From Thalia democratica (lineage: Eukaryota), in NCBI GenBank assembly GCA_965202585.1, contig OZ241826.1, positions 21,948,001 to 22,012,000 on the forward strand: a DNA stretch of 64,000 nt, read 5' to 3'. Below the pieces are notes generated by a model, which saw only the letters and a program-made list of their open reading frames with translations, made no database searches and was not told where the DNA came from. Position 1 is the stretch's first letter, and every line of letters begins with the position of its first letter. The translations under genes were made by a program, and so were the position numbers. Positions 31,241 to 64,000 of this stretch are shown one piece after another.

Positions 31241-31702
31241 ATGAAAGTGCTAATCATCGCATGCATCCTCGCATCCTCGCTAATCCGAACCGACGGACTG
31301 TTGAAGTGCAGCAAGTGCTACGACACGCATTACTACTACTACGACTCCACCGTACGCGACGAATAAGACCGAATCGACGATTGTGAGGACGCGAAAGTCA
31401 CTGGGTGCAGGAAAGGTTACTGCATCACTTACGAGCTTGACTCGTGCGAAGGTCCTCGCTGCCACGAAAGAGACTGCGACTATCACGAGTTGTGCAAATC
31501 TGTTGGGATTGGGAGTCGAGAAATTAGACACCCGTTGTGGGAGGAAAGGGTCACCGTACATTGTTGTAAGGGCGACATGTGTAACGATCAGGAAAAATTT
31601 TCCATGAACGCTGGAGTATCAGTGAGAAGGAACAAAAACTTATATCAGAAGTGTTTGTTTTGTGTTTTTGTTTTAAAGGTTATAACAAAACTTTTTGTTT
31701 AG
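31241..31702 (+). pseudogene. LU/three-finger gene, subtype A copy 1 (A1): intronless, intact frame except one premature TAA
   Basis: MKVLIIACILASSLIRTDGLLKCSKCYDTHYYYYDSTVRDE*DRIDDCEDAKVTGCRKGYCITYELDSCEGPRCHERDCDYHELCKSVG...HCCKGDMCNDQEKF...FCVFVLKVITKLFV*. TAA at 31364-31366; all 12 LU Cys retained. Confidence 0.85.
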
Positions 31703-34700: not shown

Positions 34701-35045
34701 TAGCTAAACGTAGTCAACAGACTAATAGGAAACTGTTGATTGATACTAAAAACAATTAACTTTGTTATTCTCTTAAAATGCTATTAGTTTTCAGAAAAAA
34801 AAAGGCAGCAAAATAAACTAAGTAATTGATTATACTGACTTTATTCAAAATAAAAACATTACAGCTAATGTGCTTTGTTTCATTATATATTTCTGTTAGT
34901 TATTGCTATTTAGTATGACTTAAAAATTGATAAAAGTAAATAGTGAGTAGTTTATTAAAACAGTGCTTTAAGACTTAGGAGGTTTCAAAAACAATAAAAG
35001 GCAGCAAATATAAATAATAAACTAAAACATTTCACTTAGTTCAAA

Positions 35046-35393
35046 ATGAAAATGCTAATCTTTATATGTATCCTTGTTTGTTAACTAATCTGAACAGATT
35101 GATTAAGATGCAGGGAAATGCGACAGCAAACACAATTTGTGCTACAAAACAACTCAGAAAGCTCGAACGATGCTTCTGAAGACTCGAGCATCGTTCACAA
35201 CGGTGACTTTTGCATCACGTTGCAGTTTGGTTCGAGTAAAGACTACGACTATCACGAACTGTGCAAATCTGTTGAAACTGGCCAAACTAGACACCCGTCG
35301 TGGGAGGGAAAGGTTATTAAACATTGTTGTAAGGCCGATATGTGTAATGACCGAGACAATTTCTCAGTTAATACTAGTATAGCAGTTAGTTAG
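35046..35393 (+). pseudogene. LU/three-finger subtype A copy 2 (A2), decayed
   Basis: ATG 35046; three in-frame stops in the signal-peptide region (taa, tga, tga); loop II deletion and lost Cys; still shows HELCKSV..HPSWEG..HCCKADMCND. Confidence 0.88.
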
Positions 35394-36184
35394 AATAAAT
35401 AATTAAATCAGAAGTGTTCGTTTTACGTTTTTTAAAGGTTATACCAATACCGTTTGTCTGATTTTAAAAATATGTGTATTGTAAATGTTGTTACAACCAC
35501 TTCTAAACTTTCATTAAACAAAATTATAATATCTAGGATTTATATTTTTTTTTATCACATTTTATCACAATTTATACATTTTTTTTTCGTTAGGGTAGGT
35601 TTTTATAACATCAATAGCTAAAACTTACACATAAAAACTGTACTAAAATATGTCTTTTTAAAATTTTAAAAAGCAATTTTACGTCTATAGTGTTTTTACT
35701 ACTATAACATTTTATGAACTAACTAAAAATTTGTTTTTTTAAGAATTAGTTGTTTTAGAATTGTAGTCAAAACTAGATGTCCACAGTCTTAAAAATTAAA
35801 GGCAAACTTTAATAAAAAGATAATTGTAGGCCTCATTTACTTACAAGAAAAAAATTTAGTAAATAAATGATTCTCATTTTAATACAAAACAAAACGAACT
35901 GTTTAAGTAATTTTAGTTTTAAAATTTTAATAAATATAGATAAAAAAATTAACATTTCTTAATACTTTAGAAGATAAATTAGTTCTGTTTAATAAGATTT
36001 TTTAAGTTTTACCCAAAGCAAAAATAAAACAATTTAACAAAGCAATAGGAAACTAATCGTTTGTGACTATAACAACTAGCTTGTTCTCCGAATAGTGCTA
36101 TTAGCAATAAGAGAATAGAAGTAAAAAGGAGCGAAGACTAATAGAAAACCGTTTAGAACAACCTAAATTTTATTTCCATTCAAA

Positions 36185-36628
36185 ATGAAGGTGCTACTAT
36201 CTGTATTCACATTAGTTTTTTTGATAAACGCAAAAGAAGGGCTAAGATGCCGAAAATGCAACGACGCTAATCATTTCTATGATATAGAAACTTGTGACGA
36301 AACTAACAATAAGACCGCTCGGTGGTGCGGCAGCAGTTATAAATTCTGTGTAACTTACATGTTTGAATGCGAAACAGATTCTGGCTGTTATGAAAAAGAC
36401 TGCGATTACTTCCACTTGTGTAAGTCTGTTGGAACTTTTAAAACTTCGCACCCATTTTTGTCTAAGAACATCACAGTTAGCTGTTGTCGTGGTGATATGT
36501 GCAATGACCTGAAGGAAGAAATTTTGCTCGTAAGCGCTGGTAAATCAGTAGGTTTTAAAAACATATCAAATCACATTCGTGCATATTATGTTGTGTTTCC
36601 AGTGGTTGTAGCATTACTGTTTGCTTAA
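36185..36628 (+). CDS. Ly6/uPAR (three-finger) protein, subtype B copy 1 (B1), 147 aa, predicted GPI-anchored, intronless
   Basis: Signal peptide; 12 Cys ending in CCRGDMCN; small-residue site (SAG), spacer and hydrophobic C-terminus YYVVFPVVVALLFA with no cytosolic tail. Confidence 0.93.
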   Translation: MKVLLSVFTLVFLINAKEGLRCRKCNDANHFYDIETCDETNNKTARWCGSSYKFCVTYMFECETDSGCYEKDCDYFHLCKSVGTFKTSHPFLSKNITVSCCRGDMCNDLKEEILLVSAGKSVGFKNISNHIRAYYVVFPVVVALLFA

Positions 36629-38228
36629 GTTTACTTTGTTATGTTTTCATTATGTGTTAAGACCAGTTACAAACAATTAATTTTATACTTAATAAAGATT
36701 TAATAACAATTAAAAGCAGCCTTGTTTTACTATATGTTTTTTACGCTTTTACGATAGATTTTTTGATAGCCTTCCTTAGGACTAAAACGAATAGTTTTTC
36801 GCTTAGGCTGCCCATTTTAGCTGTTTACTTAAAGTTTAGTTAGATTTTTTAGAATATAATTGATAATAAATGTATCAGTGTGTTTAGCGTATAATTACAT
36901 AAAGTAGCTATGGTCGTTTAAATATAATAAACTATAAGTTTATTATCGCTAACGTTTATTATCATGAAACTAAAACTAAATAAACTGTCATAATCAATAT
37001 CAAAATATAACCAAGTTTTTTAGTATAGCTTTAATATTATTTTTTCTCCATATTTAACAAAGTTTTCTACATTTATTTTTGCCATCATAATAATTGTCAA
37101 TTGCTTCCGTTCGCACTTAAATGTTTTATTAGATAGTTTCAAAATCGTCTTGCAATCGAAATTTAATGAATTTTTTATATTTTAAAAAGCTTTTCTAATT
37201 GTGGGCTGAGTAAAAAAATTAAACGTTTTAATAAACCAGTAGGTCAGAAAAAAACAATATTTTAGAATTAAAACTATTTCACACACTAACATGCAAATTT
37301 GTTTAAAGTTTTGATAATTTCTAGTAAAGAAATTTATCTTACTATTCCTATTTTCTATTTCGCTTCATTTTTTTAACTTAAATAGAAATATAAGAATAAA
37401 TTTTCAAGTTATCTTTATTCGTATAGTTGCATTCTATATTTAAAGTAATATAACTTTTAAGGTGAACTAAGAATAATTATATGCTAATTTAGTTTTACAT
37501 GTCTTTGAGATGGTTTTTAATAATCACTAGTATTATGAAACTTATGGACATTAACATTTGTTTTAGCTTATTTAATTGAATTTTAATTATAAAAAGTTTG
37601 AGTTTATGTTTATAATAGAAAACTATTTGTATATTTGAAGAAAAAATAACAGAACACTTTTTGTTTTAAAATAATAACAATAAAAACAGCTATACTTTCT
37701 TTTTTTCAAACTAGCAACAATACTAATTAAAAATATTTGTACAATGGAACAGTTGTTATACAATACTGTTATTTTTGAATGTTTTATGTAAGTTTATTTT
37801 AGTTGCATACTTTATGTTTTAATGAAAGTTAAACTTTTTTAAATTTTATTGAATATTTAAACTAGTATTTATTTTTAAATTTGTTGAATTACGACCATAT
37901 AGTGTAGAGGTCCTAATGACTGCTTTAAAAACTGTTTAAGTAAAACGTTGAAAGAACTTAACACCTTACCAATGCATTTAAAATAAAACTTCCATTCTGT
38001 TTTTTTAGTTGTTTAGTTTATTTGACTCAATATGTTAAGTATTGTAAGAGTATTAGCACTTTAAGTATGTTCCCTTTTTTTGTTTAACAACTTGTGTTCA
38101 ATTATGTTGTCAAAAAACAGTTTAAGCTCACTAAATATTTTTAATAAACCAAAATTCCATTTGTATATAGTTAAAATAAAAAATACAAAATAACAAACTT
38201 ACATAGTACATTTTTTATTAAACTAACA

Positions 38229-38300
38229 TATGTTTTTGTTTGTTAGTACTCTCGTATCTTTACGCAATTTTTCTGTGGACACAATGTGCGTAATTACGCG
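38229..38300. mobile_element. Small Tc1/pogo-like TIR remnant at a deletion breakpoint
   Basis: Imperfect inverted repeats (tctcg..tacgca / tgcgta..cgaga). The right end reads TACAGTAACCTCTCGCGTAATTACGCA on the minus strand (TA + CAGT start typical of Tc1/mariner/pogo ends). It is absent from the paralogous block. Confidence 0.45.
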
Positions 38301-40475
38301 AGAGGTTACTGTATATTACAAAATTCTGAAAATTGAGTTGTTAAAAATGTTCTAAAAAGCAAATTTGTTCATTTTAACATACATATCGATATATGCCTTT
38401 CTATAAACAGTTATAGTCCTTCAGTTTCAGATTACTAAAAAAAAAAATTTAAGGAACATCGAGTATTGGTTCACGATAATTCAAACACTGCTTTTTTATT
38501 GATACTGCAATAGTATCTTTTAATATTTCAAACAAAATTTCTGTACGACCGTAATATTTATTAAATTGACATTCTTGTACAATTTTACTATTTTTGTTGT
38601 TTAATTATGTTCACAACGAGCGCACTCAAAACATTTAAAGTTTAAAATTTCTAGCAATTTAGTAAACGTTTCGTCAAAAATTCATTTCAATAATACATAA
38701 TTGAATTTTTTCATAAATAATAATATTAGACAACCTTAACTTTACAAACTCTTACTATAAATAAAGAACTATTTTCGATAAAAATAATAACTAATAAAAA
38801 AAAATAATTGTCTATAAATACTTACTACTTTTAATAATTTTTTGTTAAACTCGACTTTTAAAAAAATAAATATTTAGTTGTAAGTATTAGAATGCTTCAT
38901 TTAATACTTTTTTTTTTACAATTTTTTTAGTTCTGTATAAATCAAAAGTTTTGAATAAGGCTTAGTAGAAGAAAACATTTTATTTATATTTTTAAACTTA
39001 AACTTTAGAAGCTTAATCTTCGTTAAATCATGTAAAAAATAAAAAATCTAAATTTAACTAAAAAGTTATTATAAAAAAAGTTGATTTTATTTATACAAAA
39101 AAAAAATAGCCGAAATATTTGTTATTTTAATCATCTAATATTTTCCTAGTATTAATTAAGTAAGTATGTGACCAATAACTTTCGAAGAAACAACTAACTA
39201 CAAATACGTAGAAGGAAAATTTTAAGTTTAAAATCTAGTTGTTGTAAACATAGAACATAATTTATTGACTATTCTTACGTTTTTTATATAACTTTGTAAT
39301 CTAAAACAACAAAAAAATGCAACTTGAATATTTACTGCGCATCAAGGCTAAAAACTAATTCTGGCATTTTGTTTTACGAAACTTTTATAAACAATTTAGA
39401 TTAAAAAGTTAAATATATTAGATACTAAAAAATATTATCAAAATTCACTGTTTAAAATTAAGTTCGTATAATAAGAAAAGAATATTAGGTTTTCAATTTT
39501 AGGTTTATAGTCAGTTTATGATAAAAAGAACAGTGTTTTGTTGCTGTAAAGTATTATTTATAAAAATACATAATCTGATTATTTATTAATGTCTAAATCT
39601 ATTCGCTCAAACCATAACAAAAAAGTAATGTTCAAAACTCATAAAATAAACATTAGTTGACAACGAATGATTTAATTAGTTAAAAGTCATGAAAATAGGT
39701 TTATTTTCAAACTATTAACAGGTAAATAAATGAGCTAAACATTTCAGGTGTAACTTTTTAATTCAAGTGTTTATAAAATATTTATTATTAACAATACACT
39801 TTAAGATATGATGTTTTGTTCTAACTTTAACGTTCTGCATTAATGGTACTATTAAAAATGTATTACAAGATTCATTAAAAATACAATTTATATTCTTTAT
39901 TTTGCAGCTAAAAATACTTCAGTATTAAATATAAAATTTAAGTATAATGAAAAACGTAGGTGTTAAATACTACTTCTATTACTATAACAAAATTAAACTA
40001 CAATAATATTTTTTAATTAAGTTTAGCTCAACAAAAAATGTTAAAATGAAAATGAACGTCTTGACGAAAACGTAAGTAAACTGTGTTAAGGTTGTACTTA
40101 TAAAATATTGAAAGAAAACTTCTATAATACGGTTGAATTTATTGTTTTTTAATGAATCAAATTAGAACAACAATACTAACATGTAGAAATTTGATAGAGA
40201 AATAAAGTCTAAGTGTCGTGTTGCTTAAAATCATGCTTTATTTTGAAAACCTAAAAAAATTTAAACATCAAAACTAATAACATACTCGCAGATATTTTAA
40301 AAATTATGATAAACGTTTTAAAGATGTTTAGACCAATATATGGTAAGAATTGTAAGGATTGAATATTAAATTTTTTCCATGGTTAAGCCCGTTGTCAAAT
40401 ACAATAAACTAGTAATTGTAATAAATATTAATCAATACCATAGTCATATTTTTATTTTATAAACATTTTCCGTAA

Positions 40476-41259
40476 CTAAAAAATAATATCTAATTTACAA
40501 TAAAATATGAAAGTTAGAAGCACGAAACTCTGACCCGACACATTGTTTCCACCTGAAGACGGAAGGTTCTCATCGTTGCACAGGTCGCCCCGGCAGCAAT
40601 CCACCAAGTAGTCGTCGCCTTGAAAATCCCACTTGCTCTTTCCTTCCCGCTCGCAAAAATCGAACCAGTCGCATCCTTTCTGATACAAATCAAGCGGACG
40701 TTCTTCGCCGTCAACAAACTGCTGGTACGTGATGCAGATGTTTGCGTCGCATGTGGCAATGCTGCTTTCGTCCCCGTAGTAATCGTAACCGTAATCTACC
40801 TGAGTATATAATTTACATTTATGTTATAAAATGTAGAACTTAAAAAAGTTCTTCGAAAAAAGTTTGAATCGTTTAAGCCGTTTTCATCTTGTAAAACTTT
40901 CAATACAAAATTCCTATTCAAGTATGTATAAAAAATCATTTTACTTTTAAACTTTTTAAAAATAACTGTATAACTCAAAGCATAATATCAAAATATATTC
41001 AACAGTGAGCACACCTGTAAGCTTATAATAAACCTGAATGCTTTTATATAATTCAATTTTTATGAAAACCTTAAAGCAGAAACTAAAAAATAGTGATCAG
41101 TAAAATAATGAAAACTTAAACTAATAGAAAAAAAAATGAAATAAAAACTAAAATACAGATCACCTGTTTGTGCAGCTGATCAAAGTATGAGTGGCATTGC
41201 AAGCCAGCAGCCAGGTTTAACAGGCAAGTTAAAGCAAAGGGAAACGTAAAAGCCTTCAT
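40476..41259 (-). CDS. Ly6/uPAR protein, subtype M copy 1 (M1), 139 aa, 8-Cys LU, two exons, GPI-like tail
   Basis: Exon 1 41259-41164 (MKAFTFPFALTCLLNLAAGLQCHSYFDQLHKQ; donor gtgatc). Exon 2 40799-40476 (VDYGYDYYGDESSIATCDANICITYQQFVDGEERPLDLYQKGCDWFDFCEREGKSKWDFQGDDYLVDCCRGDLCNDENLPSSGGNNVSGQSFVLLTFIFYCKLDIIF*; acceptor actcag). Phase-0 intron. Confidence 0.87.
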
Positions 41260-43149
41260 CGTCAGTATAAATTACCAGCATCAACGAATACACTTGAGTT
41301 TATTTGCCTTATTATCTTTATAATATCTACCACACATTTATTTCTTCAGAAATGAGAAAAGCGGTTGTTCTTGCAGTTTATTTAAACTGCGTGTAAATTA
41401 GGTCAGTTCTGGCAAATTTTAAATTTGATATATTTATACTGTGAAAATAAAGTAGTAAAGAAATTTTTTAGGTACACTATATTAAAAAAAATCAACTACT
41501 GCAAAATAAACGTTTGAAAGTTTGTTAAAAAATATCATAAAATAATTTTCGTAGTTTAAATAAAATTCTATGCTTTTCGTGTTGTATTACAAATATTTTT
41601 TAATGTTTATGCAGTTTTTCAATGGTCTATCTAAATAAAAATTTAAACATGTTTAGGTATTCAACATGGTATAAAAAAATATTTATTATTCTGCAAGAAG
41701 AATAATAAATATCTAAGTAAATAATAAATATCACTAAACAATAAAATTTATTAAAATTTAAATGTTGAAGTTTGAGTTGTCAGAATTTTATTTTCATCCG
41801 CCTAGTCAAATTTCAGTAAAAAGTAAAATCTGAGGAGTTTTGTTTCAACGCTCGACGAAGTCTATTATCAGTTGTTGATGCAATTTAAGTTAATTGTTTT
41901 GAGTTTATTTGTAAACTTAGATAAACATAAACATTTAAATTTATAATCTTAAAAAAAGATTAAATAAAGTTTAGTAGTTAAAATTGTTAAAATAAATTTT
42001 GATAAAAATAAATCCCATAAAAAAAAACTTTTAACAAAAACTCTTTTTAGAACTTCACAACTTAAACAAATTCTATTTACTATAAATAATTAGGTTGAGT
42101 AAGCAGACAAACGTTTCCGATTAATTGTAAAATAAGGCTTTTATAAACACTTACGTGTATAAACATCTATTATTTGAAACTAAAATAAACTAAAAGTATC
42201 CTACTTACAATCTTCAAAAAAACTTTAATTGTGCAGTAAATTAAACTTTAATTAAATTAATTTTAATAAAATCAATTTAATTATTAATAAAATTTTAAAA
42301 AAGTAAAAAAAAAAATAATAAAATTATTTAATAAACTTTTTAATTAAAAAATAAATAAAAATGATTAATTTCGAGCACAATTTATTTTCAATATTTTACT
42401 GCTTAGAGTTTTTTTTTTTGTTTAAGCACTTTACAACTAAAAGAGATAATTTCGACGAGTTTATATGACGAATGTTTCCGAAAACGTTTGTGTATGACTT
42501 GCTTATTGTACTTATTTTAAACTAACTATAAAACTTTCGGTAAATAAATGTGAACACTTAATTGATATTATTTAAATACGTAACTAAAAGTAAAGAAATT
42601 TTTTTTTAAAAAGAAAACAAACAAACAGTTAAAAATAAAATTTTGTATTTTTGTAATGTTGTTGATATTATTTTTTTTTACAAAGTCTTTAAGTGAATTA
42701 AAAACATACATATTTGTCACTGTAATTTGTATAAGATTAGACAACTGTACATCAAATTGATAAAAGGATGTATAAAAAATGATAAATTTCAATTTGATTT
42801 AAAATTAACTAAATATAAGGCCGTGGAGAATATGTTAAAATTTACACATAGTTACATCACATTATATTTGACAAATAAAGCAATATTATTAATTGTATTC
42901 ATGTTCTATTGACTATTAGAACTAATCTTTTTTCGGAACTGATTAGACTATATATTATTTTTTTGCATTATCTTTAAAAAAAAAATAATTTATTTTTTAA
43001 TGTTGGTCCAAGGTGAAGTTTGAAATACAATTAGTAACTCATTTAATTTTTTTTCTAACCATAATCTAAAAGTTGTAGACATAATTTAATATTTGCTTTA
43101 AATTAACGTTTGATTATAACTATAAAATGTTAAACAAAGTTTATTTAGT

Positions 43150-43800
43150 AAATAAAAACTACCATGTAAACCTTCTTTTTTACAACTTTCTCGAATAGTG
43201 ATGTAACAAAACGTATCGCACAACAACTAGCTTCATTCGTACTAAATGGTATCACCGCTTATTCATTATTAACTAAGTGTTTCCACACATCCGTTTTCTT
43301 ACGGCAAATTTTGAACGCTACGCAAAGCAGCTAAACATCAGCATCAATAAAAACGTTACCTTATGTTTTGTATCATTAAATCTTAAAGCAATGAATGTAG
43401 CAAGTTTTAAGTTGTTGAAATTTTTTTAAGGAAATGTTTTAAAATCATGTGCTCGTAAAAATTAATTGTATAAGGTAAAAGTACTGGTGTTTTGAGTTTA
43501 ATTTCTTAAAAAAAAACTAAATTTACAAAAACTTTAAATCTTTTTAGGTTCATTGCTTCAAGCTTTAGTATTGCAAAACATAAAGTTAACGTTCAAGTTG
43601 ATGTTGATGTTTAGCTGCTTTGCGCCACTTTTAAAATTTGCCGTAAGAAACGGACACGTAGGATTACTTACTAAAGATAGTTCAGTGGTAGATACAATTA
43701 GTATGGATGAAACTAGTTGTTGTGGTGTACTAATCAACACGTCATAATATGAGATAGTAATTAAAAAACAAGAAATACAAAATATTGTATTAAACACCTG
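43150..43800. repeat. Inverted duplication IR1 (arms about 43150-43360 and 43582-43800)
   Basis: The reverse complement of 43290-43360 matches 43582-43655 (..ttgatg(c/t)tgatgtttagctgctttgcg....aaaatttgccgtaagaaa..) and similarity continues outward (aatgaagctagttgttgtg / gatgaaactagttgttgtg). Confidence 0.85.
43601..43747 (+). CDS. Possible small secreted peptide ORF in the right arm of IR1 (MLMFSCFAPLLKFAVRNGHVGLLTKDSSVVDTISMDETSCCGVLINTS*)
   Basis: 48-aa ORF with a hydrophobic N-terminus and a CC pair; the homologous frames in the other three arms are interrupted. Confidence 0.3.
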   Translation: MLMFSCFAPLLKFAVRNGHVGLLTKDSSVVDTISMDETSCCGVLINTS

Positions 43801-46332
43801 TGAATTTGAAAAATAAAAATAACATTAAATAGTTCCCACATTTTTTAAATTGAAATTAAAGATAAAATGTTTTATTTTAAGCTTATCAAAACATCATTTT
43901 TATCATAATGAAAAATACAGGCAATACAAGTTAAATAACTCAATCAACTTTTGCAGAAGTAAAAATTTTAACTTTATAATACCTAACATTTTGTACTAAT
44001 ACCTAAAACGTACTATAAAGTTCAATAATAATTTAAAAAACAGCATACTTTTAGTTTTATATCTAACAAAAAGTATGTACGAAGGTTTTCTTTTATCCAA
44101 AGACTATTGGTACAACATATTTAGTTTGTTCAACCACCTTTAAAACGAAAAGAAAAAAAACCTTTAATATTTAAACTATTGATATAATTTAAAACAACGT
44201 TTAAAATAAACGTTTTAAACAAATTTTGATACTTACTTATGAACCTAGAAAAATAAGAGTAGGTATTAAATAAAATTATATGTTTTTAAACGATGAAGTT
44301 AATTTCAATAAAATAATTGCTAACTCGTTAGCTCTTGTAATTTATCAAGATTGATTAAAATATTTTAAGGATTATTTTGTGCCTGTCTTCACTTTTTAAA
44401 ATATACAACTGGTCTGAAAATATTATGAAATGATTTTAATTTGATAACAAATATATTATAAAAAATTATCGTTTTGATGAAATAGACATAGTAAATATCT
44501 TTAAATATTTTATCTGTTCATTCAGCTTAAAAGCTAATACTTTAATTTCTTTTGTGTTATGATTTTAATAACTTTACTAAAAATGCAGTTAAATGTTTTC
44601 TTTTTATTAAGGACTTTAAAAATATTTTTGTGTGACGCTTTACTTGTAGTGGTCATTTTGTGCCCTTACTCTTATTAAGTTTAACTATTAATATGGTAAA
44701 AGTTTAATTTTATTCATCTAAATTAAATTTTTGTTCTAGGAATTTTGTTAACTTTGTTATAAAACTCTGTTTCGGAAAGCAATATGCTTAAGTTTTATGA
44801 AATAGTTATCGATTGATATACTTTCATTGCTTTTTAATTGTTTTTGATTCCTGAATACCTCTATCAACAAAACCATTATATACTATACATTTTACTGTAA
44901 GTTTATTCCATAAAATTAAACCGTTAGTTTGATTTTCATGTGGTTTTTTAGTAGCTTTAGAAAAATATTTCTTAAAAATTAACTATTATTTTACAAACTT
45001 AAGGTAATTTAGGTTCGACTAATGTATTGTCCTTATTTAATTTATTGCTTTTCGTATATGGTCATTTTTGTATAACTTTAATAAAAAAAAATTAAGAAAA
45101 AATTAAAATGAATACTCAGAAAAACTTTCATATTAAATTTTAGGATTTACTTTTTACGATACATACGTATTGTACTTATTTACAGAGAGTTGTTTGATCA
45201 TTTTAGAATAAAACAAAAATATACTTTCTAATATTCTTCTATAAAAGTTGTCACTTAACCATAATAATCATTTAAATTATATATACCATTATTATTTTAT
45301 TATATAATTGTAGTTGTTAAGTGCTTATATGACGAGATTTCGAAATACAAACTGCTTTTTTTTAACTTAAAACATACTAATTTAGTTTTTGTTACACTTA
45401 ATGTTATGTAGAATTTATTTTCTTTGAAACCTTAAGTCCGTAACTTTTAACTAAATTTAAAATAAACATATAGAATTCCATAATCAATTAACTTGATATA
45501 AAAAGTGACTACAAACGTAATAGTAAATTTAAAAGCCATAATTGAAATGTAATCAGAAATATTTGTTTACTAACTTAATCTAAATAGTTCTAGTTATTGT
45601 TAACGGTATACATTTCAAAGTTTGAAGAAAATAACAAAAAATATTTTCTATATAATAAATACTTTATTTAAGAACAAAAACAAAAGGTAGAGTTTTATAA
45701 TAATGTATCACGCTAGTAAAATAACTTTAACCTAATTTTTTAAGACTAAATAAAGAAAAAACAACAATCTATTTTATATCAACTGAAATATAAAAATTTA
45801 TCAAAAGTTTTATATATAACTAATAGTTGACCAGTCAAATTTTCTTAGTTTTTTTTTAGTTTTTACTTTAGATTAACTATAGAATATAGAATAATAATAT
45901 TTTTTTTTATATCACGTTTACTACTAGGTGCTTAAGTTTTTGTGAAAAATATTTTGTTTTTTGACCTTTAGCAAAGCATAACATAATCGACAAAATATTT
46001 GGAAACTATTGATTGATACTTTAAACAATTAAATTAGTTTTTCTGTTTAAAAGTCATTAATTCTCAGTGAAAAACAACTAAAAAAGGCAGAAAAAGAAAT
46101 TAACTAGTTAGAACTACTGACTTGTTTTAAAATGTTAACATTATATCTAACGTATTTTTTATTTATTATTTGAAAGTTTTTGACCCTAAGTATAACTTAA
46201 AAATCAAAAAAGTAAATAAAAAGTCATTTATCTTATAACATGATTTAAAGAGTGCTTTATGACTTAGAGGTTTCAAAGAGAATAAAGGCAGCAAATATAA
46301 TTTATAAAATAAAATATTTTACTTTATTCAAA

Positions 46333-46715
46333 ATGAAAGTGATAATCTTTAAATGCATATTTGCTTGTTCGCTAATCCGAACAGAGGGCATAAGATGTAC
46401 GGAATGCGACGACAAACATAATTTCTGCTACAAAAACTACACAAAAAGCTCGCACGATGCTTGTGAAGAGTAAAGCGTGTACACACAATGTAGGCAAGAC
46501 TTCTGCATCACGTTGCAGTTTGGTTCATGCGAAAGTTCCGACTGCTGTGAAAAAAGCTGCGATAATCATGAAGTGTACAAATTTGTTGGGACTGACCAAA
46601 TTAAACACCCGTTGTGGGAGGAAAGGGGACTATACATTGTTGTAAGAGCGATATGTGTAATGACCGGGAAAAATTCTCAGTAAGTATTGGTATATCAGTG
46701 AGTTGGAAAAAATAA
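46333..46715 (+). pseudogene. LU/three-finger subtype A copy 3 (A3)
   Basis: MKVIIFKCIFACSLIRTEGIRCTEC...DACEE* (TAA 46471-46473), in-frame SVYTQCRQDFCITLQFGSCESSDCCEKSC..., then a 1-nt deletion before HCCKSDMCND. Confidence 0.88.
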
Positions 46716-47508
46716 TTAAATTAAAAGTGTTTGTTTTACGTTTTTTAAAGGTTATAACAATACTGTTTGTTTGATTATACAAAAATGTGTATTGTAAGTG
46801 CTGTTAAAACCACTTGTACACTTTCATTAAACAAAATTATAGTTTCTAAAGTAAACAATATTTTTATTATATTTTAGCACACTCTATACATTTTTTTCTT
46901 AAGGGTATGTTTTTTAAAGATCAGTAGCTAAAACTTACACATAAAAACTGTACTAATTTTTGTCTTTTTAGAATTGAAAAAGAAATTTTATGTCTATAGT
47001 GTTTTTACTATTATAAAATTTTAAGAATTAACTATAAATTTGTTTTTTTTCAAGAATTAGTTGTTTTAGAATTGTAGTCAAAACTAGATGTCCGCGGTCT
47101 TATAAAATTAAAGGCAAACTTTAATAAAAAGATAATTGTAGGCTTCATTTACTTACAAGAAAAAATTGTAGTCAATAAACGATTCCCATTTTAATACACA
47201 AATACAAAACAAAACGAATTGTTTGAGTAATTGTAGCTTAACAATTTTCATAAATATAGATTAAAAAAAAATAAAACTTCTTAACATTTTAAAAATTAAA
47301 TTAGTTTTTGTTTAATAAGATTTTTTTAAAGTTTTACCAAAATCAAAAATAAAGTAAATCAACAAAGAAATAGAAAATTACTTATATGTGACTAAACAAT
47401 TAGCTTGTTCTCCGAATAGTGCTATTAGAAACAAGAGACTTGAAGTAAAAGGCACTGAAAACAAGTAGAAAACCGTTTAGAAAAACCTAAATTTCATTTC
47501 CATTCAAA

Positions 47509-47946
47509 ATGAAGGTGATACTGTTTGTATATACATTAGTTTTATTCATAAACACAACAGAGGGGCTAAGATGCCGAGAATGCTGCGACGATTATCATTT
47601 CTATGATATAGAACCTTGTGACGAGACTAACAATAAGACCACACGGTGCAATAGCAGCAATAGATTTTGCGTCACTTACAAGCTTGAATCATGCGGAACA
47701 GGTTCTGACTGTTACGAAAAAGGCTGCGATTTCTTTCACTTGTGCAAGTCTGTTGGAACTTTTAAAACTTTGCACCCGTATTTGTCGGAGAAGGTCACAG
47801 TTAACTGTTGTCGTGGTGATATGTGTAACGACCTGAATGAGGAAATGTTGCTAGTAAGCGCTGGTAAGTCAGTGGGTTTTAATAAGATATCATGTCGTGT
47901 GTATCATGTTATGTTTCCAATGGTTATAGCACTATTATTTGTTTAG
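47509..47946 (+). CDS. Ly6/uPAR protein, subtype B copy 2 (B2), 145 aa, predicted GPI-anchored, intronless
   Basis: Signal peptide; 13 Cys in the LU domain (extra Cys in RECC); CCRGDMCN; hydrophobic tail VMFPMVIALLFV. Confidence 0.93.
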   Translation: MKVILFVYTLVLFINTTEGLRCRECCDDYHFYDIEPCDETNNKTTRCNSSNRFCVTYKLESCGTGSDCYEKGCDFFHLCKSVGTFKTLHPYLSEKVTVNCCRGDMCNDLNEEMLLVSAGKSVGFNKISCRVYHVMFPMVIALLFV

Positions 47947-50900
47947 TTTTACAAAAATATGTTTTTTGTATTTGTTTAGACAAGTTAATAAGTTTTATAT
48001 AATAAAGTTATAATAATAATGTAATACATCCCTATTTAAAGTGTTCTTACATTTAGCATTTGTTTCTTTTAGAGCTATTTTTAAAACTTAATAAAACAGT
48101 AATCTACTTGGCAATTTTGTGAGCGTTTATTTAAGTTGTGTACTTCCTGTTTAAAAAAAGCTATAACAGATAAGTTATAATAAATGTACTTGTTTATTTA
48201 GTGTAAACATATAAAATTGTTAAAGCGACTTACCTATATATTTTCATCATTTAATACAATGCCAAATGCAACAGCTTATAAGGTTATTTACGTTTTTCGA
48301 AGCTAAGACTAAACAAACAGTTTTATAAAGAACTATAAATAATTAACATATTTAGTAAGCATTTGTAGCCTGCTTTTTAGCCATACTTAATAAACTTGTT
48401 TCTACATTTATTTTGAGTAATGTTTTAATCATCAATTGCTTCCGTTTTAACCAACTTGTTTCATTTAATTAGTATTCAAGTCGTTTTGGAATTGGAATTA
48501 TGTAAACTTTGTATTTACTTAAATTTTTTTAAAGGTTAGTTAAGTAAAAATAAAATGAATAGTTTCAACATTTCAATGAGGCGGTAGGTCTGACATAGAA
48601 ACGAACATGTTTTGGCGAAAGTTTAAGCTATTTCGAACTCTAACTTGCAAATTTTTTAAAATTCATATCAAAGAAATATTTTAAATTATTCCTAGTTCAT
48701 GTACCAATTTATAGCTAATAACAAAATTTTTTGTTTAAGCGACGCTTTTAAAATTTAACTAATTTTCTTTTCAAAACAATTAAATACTCACTAAAATTAT
48801 TTAATCAAACAAAATACAAGTAAACTAAAGAAAAAATCAACATAAAACTAATCAAGTTAATCATAAAAACTAAAATAGATGATTAGAATAATAATCGACT
48901 ATTTAAAAACGTTAAATATAATTTTAGATTCTTTATCATTTTATTTTATAAGCTTATTAAATGAATAAAATTTGCTATAAGCAATATATTGGTACATACA
49001 ATCATGTAAACACCTTTCGCTACATTCCATTAATACTTCTTTTTGTGTTATTTTTTATCTTAAATAGAAATATAAAAATAAACAGTCTTTTATCTAATTC
49101 GTTTAATTTGCTTTTTTTGTAGTTAAATTAATCAAAATTTTATGACGAAATAAAACTGGCTATATCTTAAATTAGTTTTTACATTTCTTTAAGATTGTAT
49201 ATAATAATTTAAAGTGTTATGAAACCTATGGACGTAAGCTTTTGTTTTTTTACTTATTGAATTTAATTTTATCACTTAAAAGTTTTAGATTTGTTTATGA
49301 TAGAATATTACTTTAGTATGTATCTAGTTTAAAATTATTTGATAATTGAAGAAAAAAAATTCAATAACTAATTTTTATCTTAAGATAATAAAACTAAAAA
49401 CAGCTATGCTTTTTTTTTAAAGAAACAAATTTGTATAATTCTGGCCTGATACGTAGGGGTCCTAATGACTGCTTTCAAATTCTTTAAGTAAAAATTTGCA
49501 AGATATAAACCCATTGCCAACACGTTAAAAAAAACTAACATTCTGTATGTTTCTAATTTTTGCTTTATGCTTATTTAATTTAATATGTTAAGTAGTCTAA
49601 AAATAATACGACTATAAATATGTTCCCCTTTCAAATTTGACAACTTTTATCTAATAATATTGTCGAGAAACAATTTATGCTTCCTAAATACTTTTAATGA
49701 AAACGGATTTTAATTGTGCATAGTTAAAATAAAATATATAAGATAACAAGCTTACCAAATACTTTTTTTTATTAAACTAGCACAGTTTTCTATTTATTAA
49801 CAAGTTAGAATACTTCTACAGAGCTATAGAAGCTAAAGAAGTAATAAGAATAAGGGTATTCCTTTAACTTTAATAGGTCTGTTGATGTATGTAAAATTTA
49901 AAACGCACAAAACATATGTTAGTTTAGTAAAGATAGAAAACTGTGTAAACTAGTTCTTATATATTCCAGTAAGCTTGTTTCGCTACGATCTCTATTAGAA
50001 AACAATTAACTTTAAATTTTGAATAGTTAAAAGAAACAAACACTATAAAAAATTGTATTAAAAAATGACACATTTCTACATTACTGATGAAGGATAATGA
50101 AGCATGAGGCATGAAATATCTTCAATGTATTATACTTTTATATGATTTTAAGAACGGCGTTTTACAGAATAAGAAGACGTTTGTAGTTTGTTGTTCTGTT
50201 TTAATCAAAATAGTTAAACTTTTAGAATTTTTTTAAATTAATAGTATCAATTGTCATGTTTTTTTCAAATTCAAAACAAATAAGATTTTAAGACTTTGTT
50301 AAGCTGTTTACTAGTATTTATTAACGGTTTAATTGTTACACTTTTTTTTAATTTTTGTACTTTATTACGGAACACTTCATATATGTATATCCTTAAATAT
50401 CCTGAATAAACTTTTTATAATTGAAATATAATTTTTTTTTGTTTTTAATGTGTTTATGATTCTGTAAATGTTTTCATTTTGTATGTTGTCTGTATTAAGT
50501 TAAATTTTCAATATTGAATAACTAGTTATTGTTAACTAGGTTTATTTATCAAATCAAATTATTTTTATACTATTTAAAACTTAGCCTATCAAACTACTTA
50601 AAAATTAAAAGTACATACTTATTGAAAATATTTCTTGTATAATACAACTAAACTACTTATTTTTTTGCTTAACAAAAATCGAAGAAAAAAATCTAAAACT
50701 GTAACTGTAATACAGTTCTACCACAAACTACGAATAAAGAACTTCATATTTTATTTTCCTCAGAAAGTATATCAACTTCTTTTAAATTTTAGCAACATTT
50801 TATTGGTAAACTCAATTAAAAGACCTAGCGAAATTGTTAATAGTATTTATATTGGGTTTTTAGTCTTACTGTCATTTTTTTACTGTATTAAAATTAACTA

Positions 50901-52090
50901 TATGTTTTGTTGAATTATTATTTTTCTAAATTTGTATTACTCTATTTTCTGTTTATATTATTCAGGTAAATACATTTTTCAAACTAAACAACACGAGTTT
51001 TGTTTTATAGTTTTAAGAAAACAATTCGTTATTAAAATCTCAGTTTACATTACAATGGATTATAACATCTAAGCTGGTTTATAATGATATATGACAATCA
51101 TCTGTTCTGAGAAAACGTCTTGTTTAGTTGTCATACAAATTAAATGCAATTAACTTATTAATATAACAGTTTAAATATTTTTAAATTACATGATAGTCAA
51201 CTAATATTTTTTATATTATAATAAGGCCACTAAGAAAAATTGTAATACAGACTATTGAAACTTGCTAATGTTAACACAAAAATTGGATTTTAAACTAGAA
51301 AAGTTCCCTAGAACAAGACTAGCAACAAATAGATTTATGTGATGTGAGAGTTGCCAAGCTAGTTATGTTAACTTCATAACTATTTAAAGAATGGAAAGTT
51401 TTCGTTGGTAAAGTTTTATTACTTATTACTAAGAAATGTCTAAAATAAAGGTAAAAGTGATTTTCTATGCCTGTGAATATTAATTTTATACAATCTTCTT
51501 CAATCATTTTTTTAACAACAAATTATAAGCATTTTAAAGCACACTTAAGTATTTTTTTAGTAGATATACTGATTTACAAAAATAATGAGATGCTCAAATT
51601 GTATCGATCTACTTAAATAAATTTCTAATAAATATTAAGTTGCATTACTGTATGAACATATTTTTTTTCTATAACATTTACTATTAGGTGCTTAAGTTTT
51701 TGTGTAAATTAATTTTGTTTTTTTGACCTTTAGCACAGCTAAATGTAGTCCACAGACTAATAGGAAACTATTGATTAATACTAAAAACAATTAACTTTCT
51801 TATTCTTTTAAAATTCTAACAGTTCTCAGTAAAAAAATAAGTAAAATCGGTAGGCAAATACATTAACTAGTTGAACATATTGACTTCATTCAAAATAAAA
51901 ATGTAGCTAACGTGCTTTGTTTAAATATTCATTTCTGTTAGTTTTTGCTATGTCGTATGACTTAAATAATAAAAAAGTATAAGTGAGTAATTAAAATATA
52001 AAATTATTTTTCAAATAGTGCTTTAAGTCTTAGGAGGTATAAAGACAATAAGGGCAGCATTAATAAACTAAACATTTCACCATATTCAAA

Positions 52091-52462
52091 ATGAAAGTGC
52101 TAATCATTACATGCTTCTTTGCTTGTTCACTAATCCGAACTGATAGATTAAGAATGAGACGACAAACATAATTTCTGCTACAAAAACATAAGTAGAAAGC
52201 TCGTACGATGCTTGTGAAAACTCAAGCATGTACACGACGGTGTAGGCATGATCTTTGCATCACATTCCAGTTTGACACGTCTGACTGCTATAAAATAGAC
52301 TGCGATTAGCATGAGCTGTGTGAGTCTGTTGGAACTGACCAAATTAAACACCCATTGTGGGAAGGAAAGGTTACTATACATTATTGTAAGGGCGATATGT
52401 GTAATGACCGGGAAAAATTCTCAGTAAATACTGGTATATTAGTAAATTGTAAACAAAATTAA
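52091..52462 (+). pseudogene. LU/three-finger subtype A copy 4 (A4), heavily decayed
   Basis: MKVLIITCFFACSLIRTDRLRMRRQT* (deletion and frameshift at the first CxxC); remnants HPLWEGKVTIHYCKGDMCNDREKF in another frame. Confidence 0.85.
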
Positions 52463-53239
52463 ATCAAAAGAGTTAGTTTTACGTTTTTTAAAGGTTATTA
52501 CAATGCTGTTTGTCTGATTTTACAAAAATGTGTATTGTAAATGTTGCTAAAACCACTTCTAAAATTTTAAAAGATAATTATACAATTTTCTAAGATAAAC
52601 ATCTATTTTTTTATTTTAGCACATTTTATACATTTTTTTACATTAGGGTAGGTTTTTATATGACCAATAGCTAAAACATACAAATAAAAACTATACTAAA
52701 ACTTGTCTTTCTAGAATTTTAAAAAGCAATTTTATGCCTAGAGTGTTTTTACTACTATAATATTTCAAGAATTAACTATAAATTTGTTTTTTTTTAAATA
52801 GTTGTTTTAGAATTGTAGTCAAAACTAGAAGTCCGCAGTCTTTAAAATTAAAGACGAACTTTAATTAAAAGATAATTGTAGGCCTCATTTACTTACAAGA
52901 AAAAATTGTAGTCAATAAATTATTATCATTTTAATACAAAACAATACGAACTGCTTAGGTTTCTGTATCTTACAATTTTTAATAAATATAGATTAAAAAA
53001 ATTAACACTTCTTAACATTTTAGAAAATAAATTAGTTTCTGTTTAAAAAGACTTTTTTAAGTTTTACCAAAATCAAATATAAAGTAAATCAACAAAGCAA
53101 TAGGAAAGTAATAGTTTGTGACTAAAACAATTGGCTTGTTCTCCGAATAGTGCTGTTAGAAACAAGAGACTTGAAGTAAAAGGCACTGAAAACAAGTAGA
53201 GAACCGTTTAGAACAATATAAACTTCATTTCCATTCAAA

Positions 53240-53686
53240 ATGAAGGTGATACTGTTTGTATTTACATTAGTTTTTTTCATAAACGCATCAGAGGGGCTAG
53301 AATGCCGAAAATGCAACGACGATAATCATTTCTATGACGTAGAAACTTGTGAAGAGACTAACAATAAGACAACACGGTGGTGCGGTAGCAGTTATAAATT
53401 CTGTGTAACTTACAAGTCTGAATCATGCAGATCAGGTCCTTCTTGCTACGAAAAAGACTGCGATTACTTTCACTTGTGTAAGTCTGTTGGAACTTTTAAA
53501 ACTTCGCACCCATTTTTGTCGAAGAACATCACAGTTAGCTGTTGTAGAGGTGATATGTGTAATGACTTGAAGGAAGAAATTTTGCTTGTAAGCGCTGGTA
53601 AATCAGTAGGTTTTAATAACATATCAAATCACATTCGTGCATATTATGTTATGTTTTCAGTGGTTGTAGCATTACTGTTTGCTTAA
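53240..53686 (+). CDS. Ly6/uPAR protein, subtype B copy 3 (B3), 148 aa, predicted GPI-anchored, intronless
   Basis: Signal peptide; 12 Cys; CCRGDMCN; hydrophobic tail YYVMFSVVVALLFA. Confidence 0.93.
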   Translation: MKVILFVFTLVFFINASEGLECRKCNDDNHFYDVETCEETNNKTTRWCGSSYKFCVTYKSESCRSGPSCYEKDCDYFHLCKSVGTFKTSHPFLSKNITVSCCRGDMCNDLKEEILLVSAGKSVGFNNISNHIRAYYVMFSVVVALLFA

Positions 53687-56600
53687 GTTTACTTTGCTAT
53701 GTTTTCATTATGTGTTAAGACCAGTTTCAAACTGTTAATTTTATACTTAATAAAGATTTAATAACAATTAAAAGCAGCCTTGTTTTACTATATGTTTTTT
53801 ACGCTTTTACGATAGATTTTTTGATAGCCTTCCTTAGGACTAAAACGAACAGTTTTTCGCTTAGGCTGCCCGTTTTAGCTGTTTACTTAAAGTTTAGTTA
53901 GATTTTCTTGAATACAATTGATAATAAATGTAGCAGTGTGTAAAGCGTACAATTACATAAAGTAGCTATGGTCGTTTAAATATAACTAAACTATAAGTTT
54001 ATTATCGCTAACGTTTATTATCATGAAACTAAAACTAAATAAACTGTCATAATCAATATCAAAATATAACAAAGTTTTTTAGTATAGCTTTAATATTATT
54101 TTTTCTCCATATTTAACAAAGTTTTCTACATTTATTTTTGCCATCATAATAATTGTCAATTGCTTCCGTTCGCACTTAAATGTTTTATTAGATAGTTTCA
54201 AAATCGTCTTGCAATCGAAATTTAATGAATTTTTTATATTTTAAAAAGCTTTTCTAATTGTGAGCTGAGTAAAAAAATTAAACGTTTTAATAAACCAGTA
54301 GGTCAGAAAAAAACAATATTTTAGAATTAAAACTATTTCACACACTAACATGCAATTTTGTTCAATATTTTAAAAATTTCTTACAAAGAAATTTATCTTA
54401 TTATTCCTATTTTCTATTTCGTTTCATTTTTTTAGCTTAAATAGAAATATAAGAATAAACTTTCAAGTTATCTTTATTCGTATAGTTGCATTCTATATTT
54501 AAAGTAATATAACTTTTAAGGTGAACTACGAATAATTATATGCTAATTTAGTTTTACATGTCTTTGAGATGGTACTTAATAATCACTAGTATTATGAAAC
54601 TTCTGGACATTAACATTTATTTTAGCTTATTTAGTTGAATTTTAATTTTAAAAAGTTTGAGTTTATGTTTATAATAGAAAACTACTTTTGTATGTATAAA
54701 GCTTAAAATTATTGTATATTTGAAGAAAAAATAACAGAACACTTTTTATCTTAAAATAATAACAATAAAAACAGCTATACTTTCTTTTTTTCAAACTAGC
54801 AACAATACTAATTAAAAATATTTTGTACAATGGAATAGTTGTTATATAATACTGTTATTTTTGAAAGTTTTATGTAAGTTTATTTTAGTTGCATACTTTA
54901 TGTTTAAATGAAAGTTAAACTTTTTTAAATTTTATTGAATATTTAAACTATTAATTACTTTTAAATTTGTTGAATTACGACCATATAGCGTAGAGGTCCT
55001 AATGACTGCTTTAAAAACTGTTTAAGTAAAACGTTGAAAGAACTTAATACCTTACCAATGCATTTAAAATAAAACAACCATTCTGTTTTTTTAGTTGTTT
55101 AGTTTATTTGACTCAATATGTTAAGTATTGTAAGAGTATTAGCACTTTAAGTATGTTCCCTTTTTTTGTTTAACAACTTGTGTTCAATTATGTTGTCAAA
55201 AAACAGTTTAAGCTCACTAAATGTTTTTAATAAACCAAAATTCCATTTGTATATAGTTAAAATAAAAAATACAAAATAACAAACATACAAAGTACATTTT
55301 TTATTAAACTAACATATGTTTTTGTTTGTACACAAGTTAACAAACTTCAAAAGTGTTATAAAATTTGAAGAAATAACAATAAACAAAAAGTTTTTTTTTT
55401 TTAATTTTAATAGCTCTATTGAGGTTTATAAAATTATAACGCAAAGAAACAAAGATAGTTAGTTTAATAAAGATAGAGTACTGTGTAAATCAGTTAATAT
55501 AACTTTTCGTGAGCTTTTTTCGCTAGGATCTCTACTTAAAACGATATACTCCCAAATTAGAACAGTTAAAAGAAAAAACATTATAAAAAATTGAATTAAA
55601 ACAATAAAACATATTTACATTACTGATAAAGCATAATAAAACATGCAGTATAATGTAACTTTAATTAAGTATTATACTTTTATTTAATTTCAAGAACGGC
55701 GTTTTTTAGAATGAAAATAAAGTTATTGTTAAATAAAAAATTCTTTTCAACCTGCTTTAAGTAATAGTTGTTAACCTTCAACAAACTTAATTTAGTTTAG
55801 TACCAAAACAACTTTTGAGGTAATGAATAAGTGCGTTTTCTGTTTTAATATATAAAGCTTTGTCACTAATGTTTGGTTTTAAAAATAATATTTAATTTTT
55901 TTTCAATTAACTGTGCATAATTTAATTCAAGACCTTTTGCAATTTATTTGTCTTTTTTTTGATCAAGTCAATAAACTTATTAAACTTTTTTATTTATAAG
56001 TCAATAGTGTTATTAAATATAAGTTAAACATATTATAAAAATCTACTTTACTTATAACTACGGTCACAACAAAATTATTTAAGTTTTTAATTTTTTCATT
56101 GTAAACTATTTACATTATTCTTAAATAAAAAAAGCAGATACCATTTTTTTATCAAAATATGATAAATTTAGTCTATATTCTTTTTAATTCAATAAAAAAT
56201 AAGAGTCTTAGATTTTATTAAACTGTTTAATAGTATTTATTAGCAATTTATTTATTATAATATTTTTAAACTTTTGTATTTATTTACGGAATGCTGCAGT
56301 ATGTATAGCGTAAAATATCCTGAATAAACTTTTTATAACTAGAATATAAATATTTGATTTGTTTTTCATGTGTTTATGGTTTTGTATTTATTTTCATTTT
56401 GTACGTTGTCTTTATTAATGTAAATTTTTGATATTGAAACTATTATAATTATTATTAATTAAGTTTATTTTTTGAAATAGAATATTTCTAAAACCATTTA
56501 AAACTTAACCAATTGAACTATTTTAAAATTAAAATGATTAAAATGGACTTATTGAAAAATTAACCGGACTTTTTTCTCATTCGCTATAATTAAGCTATTT

Positions 56601-59600: not shown

Positions 59601-60669
59601 ATAATTCTAGTATTTTTATGTTTCGGAAATTTTATAAAAAATTTAGATTAAAAAGTTAAATATATTAGATACTTAAAAATATTGTCAAAATCCACTGTTT
59701 AGTATTGGGTTCGTAAAATAAGAAATGGTTATAAAAAAAAAGGTGAACAATTTTAGGTTTATAGTCAGTTTATGATAAAAACAAGTGTTTTGTTGCTGTA
59801 ATGTATTATTTATTAATGTTTAAATCTATACGCTCAAACCATAACAAATTTTTTTGTTCAACTAAACATTAGTTAACAACAAATGATTTAATTTAATTAA
59901 CTAAAAGTCATATAAATAGTTTTATTTTTTAAACATTAACAACTAAATACACAAGCTAAATATTTTAGGTGTAACCTTTTAATTCAAGTGTTTATAAAAT
60001 ATTTATTACTAACAATGCACTTTAAGATAAAATGTTTTGTTCTAAGTTAAACGTTCTGAATTAATAGAACAATAAAAAATGAATTACAAGATTCATTAAA
60101 AATTCAATTTGTAGTATTTTTTTTTTTGCAACTAAAAACTTAAAGTATCAATCAGAAAATTTTATTATAGTGAAAAACATAGGTGTTAAATGTTATTTTT
60201 ATTACTATAAAAAATTAATATTATAACAAAATTTAACTACAACGATATTTTTGGTTAAATCATAAAATGTTAAAATAAAAATGAATATCTTAATGAAAAC
60301 GTTAGTAAACTGTGTTAACGTTGTACTTATGAATTATTTAATGAAAGTTTCTATAAACATGGTTAAATTTATTGTTTTTTAATAAATCAAAACAGAAACA
60401 ACAGTTTTAACGTGTAGAAATTTAAAGGAGAAATAAAGTCTAAGTGTTGTGTTACTTAAACTTATACTTTATTTTAAAAACCTAAAAAAATTTAACATCA
60501 AAGCTTGTAACTTTTATCATACACATACTCGCAGTGACTTTATAAATGATGATAAATATTTTAAAGATTTTTAAATCAATATATGGCAAGCATTTTAAAG
60601 ATTAAATATTAAATGTTTTCAATGGTTAAACCCGTTGTCAAATACAAAAATTAATAGTTGTGATAAGTA

Positions 60670-63960: not shown

Positions 63961-64000
63961 TCTGTGAAGTTGAAGTTTGAAAATCATATTAAATAGTTTT

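Follow-up and report, generated by a model that had tools for sequence, protein, structure and literature searches.

Tandemly duplicated LU genes of Thalia democratica with a putative sixth disulfide in finger II

Three intact B genes and their marine relatives

The DNA analysed here (hereafter the window) is a 64,000-nucleotide stretch of the Thalia democratica genome (assembly GCA_965202585.1, contig OZ241826.1, positions 21,948,001 to 22,012,000), with a G+C content of only 21-30% per 2-kb bin and without runs of N. Using the proteins of the first-pass annotation as tblastn queries, ten copies of one small cysteine-rich gene family were found in the window between 31 and 62 kb. The subject of this work is the three B genes, whose products are predicted to carry an additional pair of cysteines in the second finger of a Ly6/uPAR (LU) three-finger domain. 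B1 (36185-36628), B2 (47509-47946) and B3 (53240-53686), all on the plus strand, are intact intronless open reading frames of 147, 145 and 148 amino acids, respectively. In B1, a signal peptide (residues 1-19) precedes the LU domain (approximately residues 20-107) and a C-terminal signal of the glycosylphosphatidylinositol (GPI) type (approximately residues 117-147).

The twelve cysteines listed for B1 in the first-pass annotation of this DNA (positions 22, 25, 37, 48, 55, 62, 68, 73, 79, 100, 101 and 106) match the translation exactly. All twelve are kept in B2 and B3, with a shift of +1 relative to B1 from the sixth onward in B3, and the additional pair has the form C-x5-C in the three proteins, as had been claimed. 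Its codons, from Cys62 to Cys68 in B1 and enclosing five residues, lie at 36368-36388 on the plus strand in B1, at 47692-47712 in B2 and at 53426-53446 in B3. B2 has two further cysteines: Cys26, an odd one within the domain, and Cys129, which lies in the hydrophobic tail at the C-terminus. The former (codon 26, 47584-47586) adjoins the canonical Cys25 and is a thirteenth cysteine of the mature domain, whose unpaired thiol could permit alternative pairing or covalent dimers. The mature N-terminus of B1 reads L-R-C-R-K-C; B2, B3 and most relatives retain its C-x-x-C motif. At the other end of the domain, Cys100, Cys101, Cys106 and Asn107, which make up the CC-x4-C-N knot, are invariant in all 31 family sequences considered below. 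The knot includes an Arg-Gly-Asp (RGD) triplet (CC-R-G-D-x-C-N; 36488-36496 in B1) in B1, B2, B3, D1 and D2, the environmental relatives having Q-G-D at this place. A role as an integrin motif was considered for the triplet and not adopted, as it lies in the rigid head within a conserved CC-x-x-D-x-CN consensus and is QGD in the relatives; its presence in the knot is probably incidental.

Pairwise ratios of nonsynonymous to synonymous substitution rates (dN/dS) among B1-B3 were 0.33-0.49 overall (0.39 for B2 against B1 and 0.33 for B3 against B1) and 0.27-0.53 over the LU domain. The B genes are under purifying selection and, as read from their sequences, probably functional. The three proteins begin with a hydrophobic N-terminus and end in a hydrophobic stretch of about 15 residues with no cytoplasmic residues behind it and, ahead of it, a polar spacer and the triplets Ser-Ala-Gly and Ser-Val-Gly, a layout kept across relatives. 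The GPI signal was judged by inspection and hydropathy. The first-pass proposal that the proteins are GPI-anchored thus stands for the C-terminal layout, which is typical of a GPI signal in B1-B3 and in their relatives, whereas the attachment itself is something we strongly infer from that layout. An N-glycosylation sequon, N42, is common to B1-B3 and widely kept in relatives, and a second one (N95 in B1) lies in finger III of B1 and B3.

A HMMER search of 1.84 billion cluster representatives with a window-derived profile recovered nine proteins. Eight of them are unnamed proteins of 107-159 amino acids with the same arrangement of signal peptide, domain and hydrophobic tail, and the ninth, a mucin-like protein of tilapia, contains seven LU repeats of the ordinary type. 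A second, profile-based search brought the family up to about 25 clusters. Judging from the record names, all close relatives lie on short environmental contigs from Tara Oceans marine metagenomes or a JGI sample, where they form intact, intronless single open reading frames; one of these contigs ends in a poly(A) run and is therefore taken to be a transcript. The contigs resemble the window in composition, with flanks of 19-25% G+C and coding sequence of 34-41%. Three of them (L002-L004) match the B loci with 66-70% nucleotide identity; for L002 and L003, Tara contigs with B-like genes, the aligned part also takes in some 110-150 nt upstream of the start codon. This non-coding upstream sequence (35987-36184 against L002:56-208 and L003:130-237) is about 66-71% identical, which hints at a conserved 5' untranslated region or promoter. 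Among the annotated proteins of sequenced animals, the profile searches returned none except distant fish LU proteins.

The LU fold and the additional cysteine pair of finger II

The family alignments comprise 31 sequences, namely window copies and environmental relatives, with the A type represented by a single open piece of A1. Taken singly, B1-B3 scored 7-14 bits against Pfam, where the gathering cut-offs are 21-31 bits (E-values of 0.08-8.6), the sub-threshold models being Toxin_TOLIP, UPAR_LY6 and UPAR_LY6_2. A word-indexed protein search with B1 gave no match, and a shallow six-sequence profile reached only E-values of 2-3 against the PDB before it was superseded by a deeper one. With the profile of all 31 sequences, solved structures were matched at E=6.5e-8 (LYPD6), 2.2e-4 (LYPD6B), 5.9e-3 (CD59), 9.1e-3 (SLURP-1) and 0.022 (GPIHBP1). 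Likewise, hhalign of the family against a cichlid protein annotated as UPAR/Ly6 gave a probability of 97%, and at E<=0.01 UPAR_LY6 (PF00021) was matched by 14 of the 31 members, UPAR_LY6_2 by 10 and Toxin_TOLIP by 7. Because the 31-sequence alignment matches solved structures, the cichlid protein and the Pfam LU models, membership of the LU superfamily, as judged from sequence comparison, is considered secure, and the low Pfam scores of the single sequences reflect divergence and are not evidence against the fold.

Structure prediction, one of the checks proposed in the first-pass annotation, gave a confident domain model. The B1 domain alone was predicted by AlphaFold2 as a three-finger fold with a mean predicted local distance difference test score (pLDDT) of 81.5 and a predicted template modelling score of 0.71, and with hairpins at 21-23/45-47, 55-60/68-73 and 83-88/95-101 (B1 numbering). 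This run replaced one on full-length B1, whose pLDDT of 61 is attributed to the signal peptide and tail. In a Foldseek search of the PDB, the 50 best matches were all three-finger proteins (probability 0.75-1.00, template modelling score normalised by target up to 0.75), including GPIHBP1, Lynx1, TGF-beta receptor II, erabutoxin, C4.4A, LYPD6B, uPAR, alpha-bungarotoxin and SLURP-2.

Ten of the B1 cysteines had been placed on the canonical LU pattern, and all ten indeed share columns with human LYPD6 in the HMMER alignment of the family profile. By this alignment, the canonical bonds would be 22-55, 48-73, 79-100 and 101-106 in the core, plus 25-37, the Ly6-type loop I pair, which is present as described. 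The remaining two cysteines, Cys62 and Cys68, fall between the fifth and the sixth canonical ones and flank the apex of the 55-60/68-73 hairpin in both AlphaFold2 models, in agreement with the proposed location of the extra pair in loop II. A 62-68 bond would complete a set of six disulfides and would staple the two strands of finger II just below the apex, so that the tip would become a small closed ring of 3-7 residues.

Across the 31 sequences, the finger II extra cysteines number two in 24 cases, none in five (D1, D2, P0003, P0005 and P0033) and one in two (P0009 and P0028); the 90% cluster of P0009 includes P0023, which has both. The second extra cysteine is always found four residues before the equivalent of Cys73, with 3-7 residues between the two members of the pair in the 24 sequences that have it. 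No sequence out of the 31 has a cysteine in loop III, between the equivalents of Cys79 and Cys100. The most distant clade (P0035-P0041) has the pair, with three residues between its cysteines, and at least three independent complete losses can be counted on a rough neighbour-joining tree. Retention of the pair in 24 of 31 sequences is not ascribed to chance, and the 12-cysteine form, which is the majority within its own family, is probably also the ancestral one. The staple would be old in this family, so far composed only of marine plankton sequence, and would have been lost as a pair several times. In addition, the P0005 cluster (P0005, P0015 and P0016, on environmental contigs), which has no loop II pair, shows another extra pair nested inside loop I; hence the family has put its sixth pair in two different fingers.

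These distributions bear on whether Cys62 and Cys68 are bonded to each other. Pairing is the most likely state, as judged from sequence and model, because the two cysteines are present or absent together in 29 of the 31 sequences and have been lost together at least three times independently. Moreover, the sequences without the pair retain the complete canonical set, and therefore the extra cysteines of the 12-cysteine forms would have only each other as partners.

On this basis, B1-B3 are likely to be functional cell-surface LU proteins with six disulfides, a loop II staple and a GPI signal. Several points weigh against this interpretation. No single B sequence reaches a Pfam gathering score, so that homology depends on the family profile; the AlphaFold2 confidence is lowest near the finger II tip and in finger I (block means of 64-74); and the single cysteines of P0009 and P0028, together with the thirteenth domain cysteine of B2, suggest that the family somewhere tolerates free thiols or pairings of another kind. 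The same single cysteines, the odd Cys26 of B2 and the less confident modelled tip are what would be expected if the extra cysteines were not paired with each other at all, but instead remained as free thiols, rearranged with canonical cysteines or formed intermolecular bonds in covalent dimers. This alternative is considered unlikely, given the all-or-none occurrence and repeated double losses, the self-sufficient canonical set of the members without the pair, the fixed position of the second cysteine and the placement of both cysteines on either side of the apex in the model.

The duplicated array and its surroundings

The B genes belong to a segmentally duplicated array (34635-63998, with genes on both strands) made up of unit 1 (34635-43834), a partial unit 2 (45901-50610) and unit 3 (51671-55329 plus 58555-63998), the latter being 79-88% identical to unit 1. 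Each unit has one A copy and one B gene, and a D gene is found on the opposite strand in units 1 and 3. Half of the ten family copies are broken, namely all four of the A type and one of the D type. B1-B3 would represent functional intronless paralogues in a tandem array in which gene duplications have been followed, over time, by losses.

Identity between units 1 and 3 rises from about 85% in the upstream sequence and the 5' half of the B coding sequence to 95-99% in its 3' half and the following 1.7 kb. The jump to high identity (36380-38243 against 53440-55329) starts midway through the B coding sequence, suggesting that a tract of recent gene conversion or recombination has made the B1 and B3 sequences uniform in their 3' halves. 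Diversifying selection was considered, as the 5' half of the coding sequence differs more between B1 and B3 than the flanks do, but was rejected, since identity in this half is no different from the roughly 85% of the upstream background and dN/dS stays below 0.5 overall. Immediately beyond the tract, about 3.2 kb of unit 3 (55329-58555), very AT-rich and with no long open frames, has no counterpart in unit 1, reflecting an insertion or a deletion. Foldback or palindromic repeats of about 500 bp, matching their own reverse complement at about 70%, occupy equivalent places of units 1 (43219-43724) and 3 (63464-63896), one in each.

All A-type copies lie on the plus strand. The C-x4-C form of the loop II pair that had been reported for A1 (31241-31702) and A3 (46333-46715) is present in both, although both reading frames are broken, a circumstance absent from the earlier account: a single in-frame stop interrupts A1, and A3 carries one stop plus one frameshift. 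The other two copies are pseudogenes with several stops and frame changes. In A2 (35046-35393) canonical cysteines are lost and the loop II pair is gone, and A4 (52091-52462) retains only one loop II cysteine out of two. The disabling pattern of A2 and A4, which belong to the sister units 1 and 3, is apparently in part common to both, which suggests an A copy already dead at the time of the unit duplication. Reading the in-frame stops of the A copies under an alternative genetic code was rejected as an explanation, as TAA or TAG terminates the intact genes and the broken copies have frame changes as well.

The D genes are on the minus strand. D1 (40476-41259) encodes 139 amino acids in two exons (exon 1, 41164-41259; exon 2, 40476-40799) separated by a GT-AG intron of 364 nt, which is located near the start of finger I, eleven codons past the first cysteine. 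Its product has a minimal 8-cysteine LU domain, without the loop I and loop II pairs, and a hydrophobic C-terminus. D2 (60670-61520; exon 1, 61425-61520; exon 2, 60670-61053) is a duplicate of D1 that likewise lacks both pairs, contains one in-frame stop and differs from D1 in its changed C-terminus; dN/dS between the two over exon 2 is 0.16.

Outside the array, short open frames resembling exons of a large multi-exon membrane protein with immunoglobulin and fibronectin type III domains extend along the plus strand from 2504 to 23210. Pfam matches in this gene were V-set (E=2.4e-5, 2504-2713), Ig_3 (E=7.7e-7, 14507-14707) and a weak fn3 (16819-17085), followed by a hydrophobic segment (18823-19008) and an acidic tail (22965-23210). 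A local tandem duplication of about 178 bp with 84% identity (22167-22669) lies just upstream of the acidic-tail exon. On the minus strand, two open frames at 28427-29185 resemble a small type I membrane protein, with a signal-like start, a cysteine-rich stretch, a hydrophobic segment and a cysteine-rich basic tail. This is the most G+C-rich patch of the window apart from the LU genes, and its open frames had no family match in Pfam. An Rfam scan of the window gave no matches.

Comparison with known LU proteins and possible roles

An extra disulfide in loop I is a known theme among LU proteins, occurring in Ly6 proteins and non-conventional toxins, and long-chain alpha-neurotoxins carry a derived disulfide at the tip of loop 2 that has been linked to alpha7 receptor targeting (PMC6600238). 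LU domains with six disulfides are also known: loops I and III hold the extra bonds of human LYPD6, LYPD6B and Lynx2 (PMC7582953), and 12 cysteines are invariant in Drosophila Coiled (PMC3058042). The superfamily has been described as having 10-12 cysteines (PMC6502960) or, alternatively, in reviews, 4-6 cysteine pairs; insect and schistosome Ly6 families are diagnosed by a set of 8-10 (PMC4476152, PMC4492491), and a 2026 survey covered about 13,000 invertebrate LU proteins without analysing cysteine patterns (PMC13719153). Literature searches turned up no description of a six-disulfide LU domain combining loops I and II, nor the position of the sixth pair of Coiled. The architecture called unusual in the first-pass annotation may thus be so in its combination of loop I and loop II, but not in its twelve cysteines, a number shared by LYPD6, LYPD6B, Lynx2 and Coiled.

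Like the Ly6-type 10-cysteine proteins (CD59, Lynx1, SLURP-1 and GPIHBP1) and the non-conventional toxins, the B proteins start with L-x-C-x-x-C, have the cysteines of the loop I disulfide and end in CC-x4-CN; most of those proteins also have a GPI anchor, which is predicted in B. The top fold matches (GPIHBP1 and Lynx1) and significant profile matches (CD59 and SLURP-1) come from the 10-cysteine proteins, which in contrast have no cysteines in loop II. Drosophila Boudin, Coiled and Crooked and Schistosoma SmLy6 resemble the B proteins in being invertebrate, tandemly duplicated, fast-diverging proteins that carry a GPI anchor (predicted in B) and one LU domain; sequence searches from the B family recovered none of the insect or flatworm Ly6 families. 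Whereas the archetypal LU gene has an intron at the tip of loop 2 (PMC6600238), B1-B3 and their Tara relatives are uninterrupted open reading frames.

Each B product would consist of a signal peptide, one LU three-finger domain and a C-terminal lipid-anchor signal, with a stapled ring at the tip of finger II. Whereas the cysteines and the remainder of the domain are conserved, the ring differs in sequence from one paralogue to another, and dN/dS inside the ring of the B genes is about 1, on very few sites. Because of this difference in conservation, the staple would most likely present a rigid, variable finger II tip as part of a binding surface for a membrane or extracellular partner.

As regards the identity of this partner, the B proteins could be endogenous modulators of nicotinic (Cys-loop) receptors, in which the staple would be functionally convergent with that of long-chain snake alpha-neurotoxins. 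The extra bond, as predicted in B, is at the same position as the loop 2 bond found in long-chain alpha-neurotoxins and kappa-toxins, with which the B proteins share the three-finger fold (PMC6600238), and several LU proteins, including LYPD6, the closest solved relative, act on nicotinic receptors (PMC8494132, PMC7582953). However, the long-chain toxins are secreted, have no loop I bond and show a tight, fixed spacing of the pair, whereas the B family has the loop I pair, a C-terminal hydrophobic signal and a spacing of 3-7 residues. They are no nearer to the B family by sequence or fold than other three-finger proteins, as none was found among the PDB matches of the family profile at E<=10, and the first one in the Foldseek list ranked 21, behind GPIHBP1, Lynx1, TGF-beta receptor II and C4.4A. 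The likeness certainly arose independently. Furthermore, the ring residues are small, polar or acidic and unconserved among paralogues, and LU proteins have many other partners. Hence, of the parallel with long-chain toxins drawn in the first-pass annotation, the position at the loop II tip is retained; the spacing differs, sequence and fold are no closer, and nothing points to nicotinic receptors in particular, a role that we regard as improbable. Similarly low odds are given to a broader version, according to which a marine plankton LU family independently evolved a snake-toxin-like cystine ring at the finger II tip on a Ly6 scaffold tethered to the membrane and still bearing the loop I bond; the ring would determine specificity in contacting a Cys-loop receptor or some other channel, and its repeated losses as a pair would mark switches of partner.

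Slightly less probable still is the reading in which the B proteins regulate Wnt co-receptor signalling in the manner of LYPD6, their nearest characterised relative. LYPD6 and LYPD6B (PDB 6gbi, 6ib6 and 6zso) are the best profile matches and UPAR_LY6_2 is the best Pfam model for the relatives, and all share a single LU domain, the loop I pair and, as predicted in B, a GPI anchor and six disulfides. Nevertheless, identity is low, and the sixth disulfide of LYPD6 and LYPD6B is in loop III, which has no cysteines in any member of the B family, whose sixth pair is in loop II. Unlike LYPD6 and LYPD6B, the B genes are intronless and lineage-specific, and a lineage-restricted, tandemly expanding family does not resemble a conserved signalling component.

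An equally slim chance is assigned to the B proteins being secreted, in a toxin- or pheromone-like manner, or held by a C-terminal transmembrane helix instead of a GPI anchor. Secreted LU proteins are common and the GPI signal was assessed by eye and hydropathy, but the short hydrophobic end without cytoplasmic residues, behind small-residue triplets and a polar spacer and maintained across relatives, argues for the anchor. Finally, that B1-B3 are decaying, functionless copies like their A-type neighbours, as the five broken copies in the window might suggest, is very improbable in view of the intact reading frames, the retention of all 12 cysteines, the dN/dS of 0.33-0.49 and the roughly 150 nt of upstream sequence conserved with Tara contigs.

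The preferred interpretation, that of functional, probably GPI-anchored LU proteins with a loop II staple, makes the B family a modest variation on a well-known and very plastic fold and not a new kind of molecule, which will not greatly surprise a specialist; it opens no long-standing question and offers no functional lead. How one scaffold can gain many functions through changes in its loops and accessory disulfides is commonly illustrated by the LU/three-finger fold, to which the combination of loops I and II, with no prior description found, would be added if the sixth bond is confirmed. The subfamily is recurrent in Tara Oceans data yet missing from annotated protein databases, and its members form a natural series, with the loop II staple present, half lost or fully lost, and with the pair of P0005 in loop I, that is useful for following the gain and loss of accessory disulfides.

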